A DNA stretch of 64,000 bases, taken from assembly GCA_943704425.1 (NCBI GenBank), contig CALSCP010001443.1:12044-76043 (forward strand), written 5' to 3'. A program made the translations under genes and the position numbers. The notes below the pieces were generated by a model. It saw nothing but the letters and a program-made list of their open reading frames with translations, did no database searches and had not been told where the DNA came from. Each line of letters begins with the position of its first letter. Position 1 is the stretch's first letter. Shown here piece by piece: positions 19,190 through 23,981 of the stretch. The stretch comes from Ministeria vibrans ATCC 50519 (Eukaryota; Protista; Filasterea).

Positions 19190-22100
19190 CTATGGCGTCG
19201 GTGGGTGCGCAGGAGCCGATGCGGGAGGACTGACGACGCCATTGCCGTCGCGGTACAGCAGAATGTCGCCCTCATTGGGCGGCTCGTCCCAATCCCTCCA
19301 GATGCGACCTGCTAGGAGTGCCTGCTTCATGTTGGCGGGGGCCATCGCCTGCAGTCGTCGTCGCAGGTCGCGCACAGAGATGACAGTTTCGCCAGGCGCA
19401 AACCCTTCGTGTGTCGGTCCCAGTGCGCGCACCAGAAGCTCCGTCAGCTGGCTCTGCGATTCGTCATCGGTCAGGTATCCATTGGCATGTGGTACAGAGC
19501 TGGTCAGGATCTGGCGGGCATAGCCTGGCATCGGTGCGGCCAGATCTGCGCCAATGTCGTCTTTGACGAGCGCACCCGAGTTGCAGAAGTCTGCAATCAC
19601 GAGCACATTGCAGCCCGGCCACGAAACCTGACCACTCAAGAGCGCACGAAGCGAATCCAGGTTGAAGCACGACCGGCGGTCATCGGGTGTCTTGATCGCA
19701 TCGCTCAGCACCAGGCCACCGCCTCCGCCGCTCACTCCATGGCCAATCAAATGCACAATCAGCAGTGAAGTTCGACCAGTGTGCTTTCCCGCCTCCTTCG
19801 ACAGCTCCAGAGCCGCCTTCTCAATGCGCGTTCGTGTCACTGCCTCCCACTTACCAGTGGCATCCACATCAGAAACAGACCGCACACTAAACTTGCGCTG
19901 TCGCCACAGCTCAGACACCAGCTTGACGCTGTTGGCGACACCGGGAAGGTCCTTGTACTTGCGAAGCGGTGATTCATTGGTGCTGCGGTACTTGCTCACT
20001 CCGACAACCAGTGCAGCGGCATGGGTGTAGCCTGGTGGAAGCGCCACATCTACAAAACGAGAAAACAATCATTTGGACAAAGCAAGTAAGAAAATACTAT
20101 TCTTACGTCCTTGGGGCTGTGTCGCCACCCACCACTGCTCCAGTCGCTCGTTGCACACGCGTGTCTTCCCCGCATGTGCTACCAGTTCTGCACCTACAAC
20201 GTCCGCTCGTCGATGTGCTTCACTCGCCTGTGCCACATCCGCTGGTGTGAAGAGAGGCGCATTCGTCTTGAATGGATGAGCCGGCACAAGGACGGGTGTG
20301 CCTCGCCAGCCCCAACGCAGCGAGCGAGTGCCGTTGCACACGGCGACACAGATGCGCTCCAGAGTACGCTGCACTCGAACGGCGTCACTGTCGTCCGTCA
20401 ACTCAATGCGCACAAACGACTCGTTTGCGTTAAGTCGCAGGCGCAGGGGAATGCACCCCTCCATTGTCATGGCATTAGTGCACCGCTGAGTCGCGCGGAT
20501 GGGAATGTTGAGGAGCGACTCGCGCCACAGCGCCACCATGAGAAGGTGAAAGGTGGCAAGAGAGACAGGGAGCAACTCGGCATGAATAAACTGGTAGAGG
20601 AACACTTGCGCAGGATGGGAGACGGGCGCATCGAGAAAGGGTGCGTGAGAGGGAAGGAGCATGGGCACAACGAGTTGCTTGCCGCGACGCAGAGCAAGGC
20701 TGAGTCGCTCGAGGCAGAGCATAAACGCAGGGACGTCAGTGATGTCGGCGCCGGCGAGGAGTGGAACCAGCTCGGGTTTGCGAGACCTGAGCATGCGACT
20801 GAACTTCTGAAGCAGCGAAAGCGACTTGGGGGCCGCCTCGCTGGGTGTGACAAAAAGTGTCTTCGACTGACTTCTTGCAGCGGTCCAAACCAGCCACTCC
20901 GCCACCTCAACAGGAAACCCACACTCCGATTCGCACTGCGCTGCTGTCAACTCAGCAAGGAGTCGATTGGTACGCAGCAGGTCACACGCATTTCCCGCCG
21001 CTTCGACCTCACGCAACATCGCCAGCGCACGCTTGCTCTTTGCCCGTCCCCACTGCGCCATCACCACCGAACACAGCAGCTCCAGTGCCCCAATCAGACG
21101 TGGCACGTCAAACACAATCGTGTCGGTGTCGCACACCCGCTGACTCGTCGCATCTGCACGACACACAAGAATGTCTGCAGCACTCTCCAGATAGGGCACG
21201 AGACCATCGCGGATCGCGTCCGCAGTCGGCATCATTCCACCGAGTGTGACGTGAGGCGTGTCGTTGAGCTCGAGTGAGCCAAGCGCGTCCACACTGGACA
21301 TGAGTTGCACGTTGCCCAGTCGCGCCCATCGCCCAATCAGATCCTGTGCTGCCACCATCTCCAACGGGAGCGTGCGGTCACGCACAGCCTTGTGCATCGC
21401 TGTGCTCACCGCCGACAGTCCGAGACGGGCCCTGCTGCCCACTTGGAAAAAGGACAAACCGGACGTGTCAGGCGGCATCATGAGATGACTGCCCAGCGCC
21501 GGTCCGACCAGACGGAGAATCTCACGGGAGACAAGAAGAAGAAGGTCGGCGGGGACGGTGTTGCGGGGGAACGTGTCAATGTGTGTGCCCACGATGATGA
21601 CGCGGAAGTACGACTTGTCGGTGATGGGCACCTGGTGGGCGATGATGTGCGCCCACTTTGTGAGGTGCTCGTACTGGCGCTGCGCCTTACGAGCAAAGTC
21701 CATGACGGACAGGTCAAAGACAAGAACGTACACAGACTCGGAACCCATGAAGAGAGCCGGAAGAGAGTCGTACATCGACTCGCCTACAAAGTTATTTGTC
21801 AATGGTAAATCGTCAGTCGATCGCATCATGTATCATGTATGGTGTACCGGCAAAGTCAAATGTGTCCATGTCAACATGCTCTTCGTGGATCTCATTCGCC
21901 AGCAGTCCTCGCACAAATGCCATTGTGGTGGACATGGCAGCCGAAGATGGTGCCGACGGAGAGGTGGTTGGCGGTGGCGGGTGATGAGGGTCGGTCGTGG
22001 TCGTTGCGCCAGATGTAGGTGGGCGTGGGGCAGCAGCGGAGTCACTTGCTGTGTGCACAGGCAAGGAGGGTCCTGCTGATAGTCCAGCGGGACTATCGTC

Positions 22101-23981
22101 CTCGTCGCTCTCCTTGTCAACCGCCAGAAGTTCCGTCGTCATCCGATCCTTCCCTTCTACATCCTCCTCTTCGTCGTCGTCGTGTCCAGCAAGAAGACTC
22201 GCCAGGCGCAACTCGTCCAGTGGAACAGTCTCAAACACACCCGCTCCCGCATTGTAGACCATTCGCAGTTTGTGCATGCGAGTGGCAATGGAGCGGTCTT
22301 CCTCGTCCGGCAACTCTTCTCCACGCAGTGCAGCCACCAGAGCCGTCTTGCCTGCCTCGGTCGCACCCAAGAACAGCACTTTGATCGACCGACACTTTAC
22401 TGAGCCACGTTTCATCGCAGCAGAGAATGCAAGGTCGTACGAAAGAGCACTGCAAAAGAGAACCGAGTGAATCCAAGAAGAAACGAAACCGTTGTGAATA
22501 TTCGTACGCCACCAGTTCTGAGATGGACCATTCCGTGCGAGTGCCGTCTTCTGCGTGCGCGACAAGATGCTCACCGGAGAGCTCAATCTTGACGGGACTA
22601 TGCACGTTTCAAATAATGAGTAACAAGTCAGAGGTGCAAGTGGGAAGGTAAGTGTACCAGCCAGTCGTTGGAAGTGTCTTGACTTTGGTTCCTTTTGCAG
22701 TGCTCCACACTTTGATTGTGCCATCATATGAGCAACTGAAAATGGTATTTCCATCACGAGACACACACACTCGACGAACCCAGCTGAAACACAATCCACT
22801 CAGTTAATTCAACTCGTTTCGACATTCACTTACTCCTCATGACCCGCAAAAGTGCGCACACTCTTTCCCGTTTGCACATTCCACACTTTCACTGTTTTGT
22901 CCCGCGAGCAGCCGATCACAAGTGACTCATCAGGTGAGAACACTGCTGCCATGACCACACTAAACCAAACCCGTACAGTCAGTTCCATTCTCACGCTGCG
23001 CATTCTCTTACTCTGAATGACCAGTCAGTGTTTTCGTGCACTCTCCACTTTCAGTTGACCACAGTTTGATAGTGTTGTCCCACGAAGCACTGAGAATCGT
23101 CTTTCCATCAAGTGAAAATCGCACAGACGTAATTCCCCTACAAAACACGATTCCATTTCCAATTCCATTCCCATTCACTCTCTTTCTCTTACCGTGTGTG
23201 TCCCTCAAATGTCTTTTCGCACACTTTCCTCTCAATGTCCCACAATTTCACAGTATTGTCCCGTGAGCCACTCAGTGCTTTCGTTCCATCCGGTGAGAAT
23301 TGGACATCTAACACAGCACTACACCAAAAGAGAATTCAATTCAAACTCAGTCGCAATATCAATCGTACCTTTTGTGTCCCTCAAACGTGAATTCACAGTG
23401 TTCTCCTTCAATGTCCCACAGTTTTACTGTGTTGTCCCGTGAGCCACTCAGTGCCTTGTTGCCATTGGGAGAGAACACTCCACTGAACACAAAACTACAC
23501 AAAGAATGATAAACACAAACACAATTGCAATTTGCATTTCTCTTACTCTGAGTGACCTGTGAGTGTCTTATTGCATGCTCCACTCCCAACGTCCCACACC
23601 TTAAGCGTCTTGTCGTAAGACGCACTGAGAAGACGCGTTCCATCAGGAGAGAAGTTGACACTTTCAATATAACTACGAATGGACAGTTTGAGTTGTGATT
23701 GTGATCGGATTGACTTACTGTGTGTGTCCACTCAGACTCCGCACAAACGAGTAGTCTCTAGCATCCCACACAGTGATGTCACGGCTCATTCCTGCACTGG
23801 CCAGCCACTGTTCGTTAGGGCTCAGTGTAAGACCAAAGATCTGATTGGTTCTTCCACTCCAAGAGAATAACGGGAAATCAAACGAGTCTGACCCACTGCT
23901 GCTGCGGTTAAACAGGCCAACCCCACTCGTTCCCGCCTCCGCGTACGCCCATAGCGACTCGTTGATCTTCACAGATCTCAT
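19190..23981 (-). CDS. WD40(x7)-Roc GTPase-COR-like-peptidase C14 (caspase/metacaspase-fold) fusion; ROCO-family protein
   Basis: Eleven exons join in frame through GT-AG introns: 23719-23981, 23547-23672, 23369-23494, 23193-23318, 23012-23137, 22834-22959, 22658-22783, 22490-22597, 21848-22449, 20107-21783, 19190-20049. Roc motifs are [24 protein letters not shown]...[10 protein letters not shown] and [10 protein letters not shown]14 motifs are [14 protein letters not shown] and VIADFCNSG. Confidence 0.85.

Follow-up and report, generated by a model that had tools for sequence, protein, structure and literature searches.

A gene on the minus strand of a 64,000-nt stretch of the Ministeria vibrans ATCC 50519 genome (contig CALSCP010001443.1; hereafter the window, whose positions are used throughout) was analysed computationally. 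Its coding region (19190..23981) reads from an ATG at 23981 to a stop codon at 19192-19190. The results support a single polypeptide chain in which WD40 repeats are followed by a Roc GTPase domain, a COR region and a Peptidase_C14 (C14) protease of the caspase fold. The gene is intact, transcribed and correctly spliced, and it encodes a cytosolic protein of 1415 residues.

Gene structure and transcripts

The gene strand was read from 24200 to 19100 with GT..AG candidates listed, and frame and phase were checked exon by exon. This gave 11 exons and 10 GT-AG introns, with 1415 codons free of internal stops. Introns 1 to 5 were located at 23718-23673, 23546-23495, 23368-23319, 23192-23138 and 23011-22960, and introns 6 to 10 at 22833-22784, 22657-22598, 22507-22450, 21847-21784 and 20106-20050. 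The original prediction, made from the DNA letters and their open reading frames (ORFs), had joined the pieces by ten GT-AG introns of 40-64 nt; the introns keep the frame as it proposed, but their lengths are 46-64 nt. Two junctions that it had named were exact, DFA-G/GESMY being split by intron 9 and QPQG-H-VALPP by intron 10. Exons 2 to 7 were 126 nt each and every one lay between phase-2 introns, which indicates one WD40 blade per exon.

RNA-type runs of several studies and a marine-metagenome poly-A RNA-seq run matched the gene, and four runs were compared over the region 19100-24100. The RNA evidence consisted of assembled contigs; run X7 is recorded as poly-A RNA-seq. Contigs in X1, X5 and X7 precisely skipped both introns for which an RNA check had been proposed, that is, the 64 nt of intron 9 (21784..21847), which splits the G3 motif of the GTPase, and the 57 nt of intron 10 (20050..20106), which lies at the boundary between COR and protease. 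Contigs in X1 and X5 skipped the intron at 22450-22507 exactly. All three introns have CT..AC ends on the plus strand, corresponding to GT..AG on the gene strand. Since contigs spliced exons 8-9, 9-10 and 10-11 exactly, the transcripts did not end before the C14 exon, and the data support a transcript that crosses all domain junctions. Six introns in the WD40 region were also skipped by RNA contigs, with net lengths of 46, 52, 50, 55, 52 and 50 nt; a few mismatched letters at the WD40 joints indicate that some RNA contigs derive from paralogs.

Together with the frame and phase arithmetic, spliced contigs covered nine of the ten introns of the coding region among the matches listed. No skipping contig for intron 22657-22598 was present among these matches, and retention of this intron would introduce an in-frame TGA. 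An X5 contig of 487 nt covered exons 6 and 7 with 176 nt left over, which equals the 90 nt of exon 8 plus the 86-nt side of the X5 exon 8-9 joint. Judged from these lengths, the contig probably spans exons 6 to 9. The spliceosomal introns and the poly-A RNA indicate that the host of the gene is a eukaryote.

At the 5' end, contigs of X6 and X7 lost their match at 23982 (23982-23990), just past the acceptor-like sequence TTTTGCAG and one base before the ATG. A single place in the genome, on contig C871, matched the 30 letters beyond this point, and did so with one mismatch. A spliced leader was therefore rejected as their source. These X6 and X7 contigs either come from a paralog or point to an intron in the 5' untranslated region, the upstream exon of which would be absent from the window sequence and could fall in the gap at 24250-24294. 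Two scaffold gaps (N-runs at 18622-18631 and 24250-24294) enclose the gene in a stretch of 5.6 kb, so that its placement among the other genes of the window depends on scaffolding.

The WD40, Roc-COR and protease modules

All domain searches and structure predictions were made exon by exon on the in-frame exons. The seven WD40 repeats proposed for the N-terminal part were recovered, as Pfam WD40 matched each of exons 1-7 (22658..23981) with E-values of 5e-6 to 3e-10. Exon 8 (22508..22597) is a stretch of 30 codons that connects the WD40 region to Roc as a linker or a closure of the propeller. It had no Pfam match and was kept in close paralogs, and its junction with exon 9 was present in RNA contigs.

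The N-terminal half of the Roc G domain lies in exon 9 (21848..22449). This exon contains the P-loop (GATEAGKT, 22367-22344), the Thr of switch I and the G3 motif DFAG (21857-21848), whose Gly codon is finished at 21783-21782. Between switch I and G3 lies a disordered, low-complexity insert of about 90 amino acids, acidic and rich in Pro, Ser and Thr (about 22193-21924). The C-terminal half of the G domain is encoded by the start of exon 10 (21377..21783) and contains the G4 motif GTHID (21589-21575). Thus G1, the switch I Thr, G3 and the [NT][KH]xD of G4 of a Ras-like G domain are all present. In an alignment of exon 9 from 20 paralogs, GxxxxGK[ST], the switch I Thr and DFAG were invariant or nearly so, with G28, G33, K34 and D198-F-A200 strictly invariant, and the insert was hypervariable. 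The residue after the G3 Gly, equivalent to Gln61 of Ras (window 21848 / 21783-21781), is Glu here (DFAGE) and Arg in LRRK2.

The insert also differed in length among copies or strains, and some RNA contigs carried insertions of 3 or 6 nt in its acidic run (22167-22170). One X1 contig skipped 405 nt (window 21792-22198) with the non-canonical ends TA..GA, a skip that is probably explained by a paralog or by a chimeric contig and not by an intron. The position of intron 9 was kept in all paralogs looked at, with a gap between the exon 9 and exon 10 matches at every locus. Paralog L006 had seemed to possess an uninterrupted G domain, but this was rejected, because the intron is present at the same G3 position and appears as continuous sequence only through being 72 nt long and in frame.

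Sequence searches recovered this central region poorly. Pfam Roc (PF08477) matched exon 9 with 15.6 bits against a cut-off of 27, a match at the level of the P-loop in a domain split by an intron and the insert. Exon 10 (558 amino acids) gave no Pfam match at E-values up to 10, and neither a Roc nor a COR match was obtained at useful E-values with the central exon of the window gene and of 26 relatives. Likewise, phmmer found no sequence match to exon 10 in the PDB. Among 1.84 billion protein representatives it returned four matches, all from short metagenome contigs of near relatives at 40-60% identity, and no detectably similar bacterial protein. Because homologues of exon 10 outside the genome were not found, the alignment was built from its own paralogs. 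In two paralogs, Roc ranked first among Pfam families for each half of the G domain, with 26.4 bits against the cut-off of 27 (L006) for one match and an E-value of 1.6e-3 for the other. Among GTPases, the exon 10 profile matched only LRRK2 Roc chains, with VGTHID aligned to VGTHLD of LRRK2.

An AlphaFold model of exon 10 was made from an alignment of 21 paralogs and metagenome proteins, and had a pLDDT of 86.6 and a pTM of 0.81. The top 30 Foldseek matches of this model were all Roco proteins, aligned over 450-570 columns with a probability of 1.00, and included LRRK1, LRRK2, Chlorobium tepidum Roco and M. barkeri Roco2. GTPase folds aligned with residues 1-135 of the model, as did LRRK2 from its residue 1398 onward. 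The remainder of exon 10, about 420 amino acids (20107..21376), adopted a COR fold with COR-A and COR-B, in agreement with the roughly 450 amino acids that the original prediction had put in the COR position. Language-model features placed exon 10 among COR-A/Roc/COR-B clusters at 0.97. The proposed Roc GTPase was likewise borne out by its G motifs, by the LRRK2 Roc profile match and by the predicted Roco fold. Of the families named for a domain search, WD40 and Peptidase_C14 matched, but Roc stayed below its Pfam cut-off and COR had no match by sequence. As Pfam thresholds were not reached, Roco membership depends on the predicted structure and short motifs. On the predicted model, the central region is a real but very divergent Roc-COR module in which COR-A and COR-B come right after Roc.

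Exon 11 (19190..20049) encodes the caspase-fold protease. Peptidase_C14 (PF00656) matched it with 40.9 bits against a cut-off of 21.4 (E 2.4e-10), and the intact catalytic residues described before were present, His in LIGHG at 19741-19739 (His103 of the exon 11 alignment) and Cys in DFCNSG at 19585-19583 (Cys155). His103 (G-H-G), Cys155 (D-F-C) and Asp153 were invariant in 20 paralogous protease exons, and a profile of the domain aligned His103 and Cys155 to the catalytic His-Cys dyad of Arabidopsis metacaspase 4 (AtMC4). The AlphaFold model (pLDDT 85.6, pTM 0.88) showed a complete caspase-haemoglobinase fold. The Asp of D-x-C, common to the Arg/Lys-specific paracaspases and metacaspases, was invariant, but the position of the metacaspase GCVND Asp in the S1 pocket is occupied by Ser, and this S40 was itself invariant in the paralogs. 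Cleavage after a basic P1 residue (Arg or Lys) is therefore only a guess from these residues.

Paralogs and selection

The assembly (29.7 Mb, 2860 contigs) contained about 40 matches to exon 10 and about 40 to exon 11, adjoining and in the same order. The window gene is one of about 40 collinear paralogs that form a lineage-restricted family, not a single odd gene, and the same order of parts was found at about 30 other loci. N-terminal diversity was surveyed at 25 paralog loci. Five to seven WD40-like exons lay upstream of Roc at 14 of these, and two more had an exon-1-like match only. At several of the remaining loci the upstream region was a scaffold gap or a contig end.

Modules have been exchanged among paralogs by recombination or gene conversion, as shown by a copy on contig C1441 (L016). 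Its Roc-COR cassette (L016 3170-5601) was 94% identical to window 22427-19995, with sharp breakpoints adjoining the starts of exon 9 and exon 11, whereas its protease was only 50% identical to that of the window gene and its N-terminus was unrelated. Instead of WD40 exons, this locus (G000:C1441:50000-59999) had a 606-amino-acid upstream ORF with a second Peptidase_C14 domain, which may be part of the same gene or of a neighbour. Contig C1441 carried three family members within 50 kb (about 52-56, 75-80 and 98-103 kb), on both strands, as a local cluster.

Other kinds of upstream sequence were also observed. At L012 (G000:C2822:46000-55999, 1-3431) a Roc-COR-caspase paralog was immediately preceded by a 958-amino-acid ORF with a weak Roc match and a clear NB-ARC match, itself preceded by leucine-rich repeats (LRRs). 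This ORF could represent either a hybrid of Roco and NLR or a separate gene next to the paralog. At L034 (G000:C312:3000-12999, 7274-8599) a TPR_12 array of 442 amino acids (E 3e-64) was located 2.7 kb upstream of a paralog in which WD40 exons were not found, and might serve as the sensor in their place or be a gene of its own. An ENA metagenome scaffold of 5539 nt (L036) contained WD40, the N-terminal half of Roc, Roc-COR and a last ORF of 272 amino acids, with a central exon 60% identical to that of the window gene. The same order on this scaffold indicates that the family occurs in at least one other marine lineage or strain.

The closest copy, on contig C1080, was 93-96% identical to the window gene in DNA over its full length, introns included, and may be a recent duplicate or a haplotig. 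The region of similarity extended from 24249, adjoining the upstream gap, to 18761, which lies about 130 nt from the downstream gap. Between these two copies the ratio of nonsynonymous to synonymous substitution rates (dN/dS) was 1.10 in the WD40 exons (30 nonsynonymous and 8 synonymous changes), in contrast to 0.31 in Roc-COR and 0.30 in the protease, values that point to purifying selection. The contrast in nonsynonymous and synonymous counts was significant (Fisher p 0.0016). Replacements in the WD40 exons recurred near blade positions 2, 11 and 18-20. The expansion of the family and the fast evolution of its WD40 region agree with a receptor role, as discussed below.

Known systems and possible function

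One of the closest known designs is bacterial. Kaur, Iyer, Burroughs and Aravind (2021, eLife, PMC8195603) reported bacterial proteins in which N-terminal LRRs are followed by an AP-GTPase (equivalent to Roc) and COR. The C-terminal effector varies and may, among others, be a caspase, TIR or trypsin domain. Many paralogs occur per genome, and the proteins, described computationally, were read as conflict systems (PMC8195603). The bacterial LRR-AP-GTPase-COR-caspase proteins and the window family share the succession of repeat sensor, Roc, COR and C-terminal caspase-type effector as well as multiple paralogs. The bacterial systems, however, are prokaryotic, use an LRR sensor and vary in effector, whereas the window gene is eukaryotic, has N-terminal WD40 repeats with no LRR before Roc, and belongs to a family of roughly 40 copies, nearly all of which have retained the caspase effector. 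The original prediction knew of no characterised eukaryotic protein of this architecture. This stands in so far as full-text literature searches, with most subscription journals outside their reach, found no eukaryotic Roc-COR-caspase protein, but the design principle was already known by prediction from the bacterial proteins (PMC8195603). The protein is best filed as a Roco protein with a C14 peptidase, a eukaryotic variant of a design known from bacteria.

Other Roco proteins were compared as well. Expanded LRR-ROCO families of brown algae, in which each exon encodes one repeat, are candidate immune receptors (Zambounis 2012, PMC3341825; PMC11378527). These share with the window family the expansion of ROCO genes in a lineage that is neither animal nor plant, one sensor repeat per exon and introns of conserved phase. 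They carry LRRs and no enzymatic effector (PMC11378527 does not mention a caspase), unlike the WD40 repeats and built-in protease found here. LRRK2, LRRK1 and Chlorobium tepidum Roco share only 8-14% identity with the protein, which lacks LRRs, ankyrin repeats and a kinase. In LRRK2 the WD40 domain is C-terminal; in the window gene it is N-terminal, Roc contains the insert of about 90 amino acids, and the output is a protease.

In DAPK1 and in the Trichoplax and mollusc ROCOs, Roc-COR is tied to cell-death machinery (PMC11378527, citing Civiero 2014). Clusters with Death and COR-A exist in the ESM Atlas. In those ROCOs and DAPK1 the connection is made by adaptor death or CARD folds or by a kinase, and in the window gene by the protease itself. 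The Apaf-1/caspase-9 apoptosome and the NLR inflammasomes use a STAND AAA+ ATPase as a switch and recruit their effector through CARD or death folds, whereas the window gene has a Ras-like GTPase with COR and a fused effector, in reversed order with the sensor at the N-terminus. No NB-ARC or NACHT match was found by Pfam in any exon of the window gene, so that the protein is not an NLR and is only analogous to one. For the protease, MALT1 paracaspase, metacaspases and the bacterial orthocaspase of the GSU0716 type are also among the nearest known systems.

Judged from what is established for Roco proteins and caspase-fold proteases, the protein is probably a self-contained intracellular sensor, switch and effector, and its outcome would likely be cell death or a defence response. 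The genes have the look of immune or cell-death receptors because the genome contains about 40 of them. In the mechanism that we propose, the variable top surface of the WD40 propeller would bind a trigger, which could be a component of a pathogen or virus, or else a self protein that has been modified. Binding would release an autoinhibited Roc-COR module, and its nucleotide and oligomeric state would shift in the manner of C. tepidum Roco and LRRK2. The C-terminal protease would then be repositioned or clustered, become active and cleave substrates, probably after Arg or Lys, leading to cell death or a defence response. The logic may thus resemble that of an NLR or the apoptosome, with a Roco GTPase in place of a STAND ATPase as the switch. 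We hold, more tentatively, that the family may be a true innate-immune or cell-death receptor repertoire of a marine protist, in which Roco replaces the STAND switch and the protease acts in cis, which would make it a second, independent NLR-like design. The design would possibly have descended or been transferred from bacterial AP-GTPase conflict systems.

Several points weigh against this interpretation. The original prediction had Roc-COR dimerise and thereby activate the protease by proximity, which is too simple: in the best-studied Roco, that of C. tepidum, GTP drives monomerisation, not dimerisation (PMC11052575). A scheme leading from GTP to dimer to proximity is therefore unsafe and may be wrong. 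The prediction of a homodimer from two copies of the caspase domain scored 0.00, which speaks neither for nor against dimerisation. Roc and COR lie below Pfam thresholds by sequence. The sensor-switch-protease role and the likeness to Apaf-1 or the inflammasomes, both put forward in the original prediction, remain inferred. The contrast in dN/dS is based on few changes in a single close pair, whose C1080 member is perhaps a haplotig rather than a paralog, and a value near 1 may reflect relaxed selection instead of positive selection. Large families bearing repeats are also known from non-immune signalling.

Among other explanations, the protein might be a Roco signalling protein that carries out regulated proteolysis in ordinary physiology and not in defence, for example in programmed cell death induced by stress or nutrients, in life-cycle transitions or in the control of the cytoskeleton or membrane traffic. 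The characterised eukaryotic Rocos (LRRK2, the Dictyostelium Rocos and DAPK1) act in trafficking, the cytoskeleton and cell-death signalling and not in pathogen sensing. Culture-type runs without a challenge contained the transcript, as did environmental poly-A RNA. We nevertheless think this unlikely, since about 40 paralogs, a fast sensor, a conserved switch and effector and the swapping of modules resemble a receptor repertoire and would be unusual for a housekeeping gene. An allorecognition or genetic-conflict system, or a selfish killer element, is an improbable alternative. In the fungal HET-E/NWD WD40 NLRs, death is triggered on contact with non-self of the same species. The combination of a fast-evolving WD40 region and a death effector is reminiscent of these fungal genes, and gene conversion within the family would fit as well, but cell fusion or polymorphic partner loci are without support, and the blades within the gene are only about 70-79% identical in DNA, unlike the near-identical repeat arrays of fungi.

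It is very improbable that the protease is non-catalytic (a pseudo-enzyme like c-FLIP) or the gene decaying, so that the protein would be a WD40-Roco scaffold only. The Ser at the GCVND Asp position could be cited for this, and nothing else positive was found; against it stand the invariance of His103, Cys155 and Asp153 in 20 paralogs, a dN/dS of 0.2-0.3 in the domain, the open frame and the spliced transcript. An artefact, in which two or three separate genes (WD40, Roc-COR and caspase) were misjoined or a piece was mis-scaffolded, is hardly credible, even though the gene sits between two scaffold gaps and the RNA evidence is made of assembled contigs, some from paralogs. Both gaps lie outside the coding region and the ten introns keep the frame. 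In up to three independent studies, contigs bridged the exon 8-9, 9-10 and 10-11 junctions exactly where splicing had been predicted, and the same order of parts recurred at about 30 loci and on the environmental scaffold.

If the proposed sensor, switch and effector function is true, STAND ATPases would not be a requirement for intracellular immunity or regulated cell death in eukaryotes, as a sensor repeat, a nucleotide switch and a caspase-fold effector would have been built on a GTPase of the LRRK2 type. The family would provide a first eukaryotic equivalent of Roc-COR-caspase proteins, which until now have been predicted in bacteria only. Standard Pfam annotation would tag only WD40 and C14 in such genes and overlook the Roco core. 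As a natural Roco with an easily assayed protease output, the protein could help to explain how the nucleotide state of Roc-COR reaches the effector, a central question for LRRK2 too. It is also a candidate player in the virus- or parasite-induced death of marine plankton.

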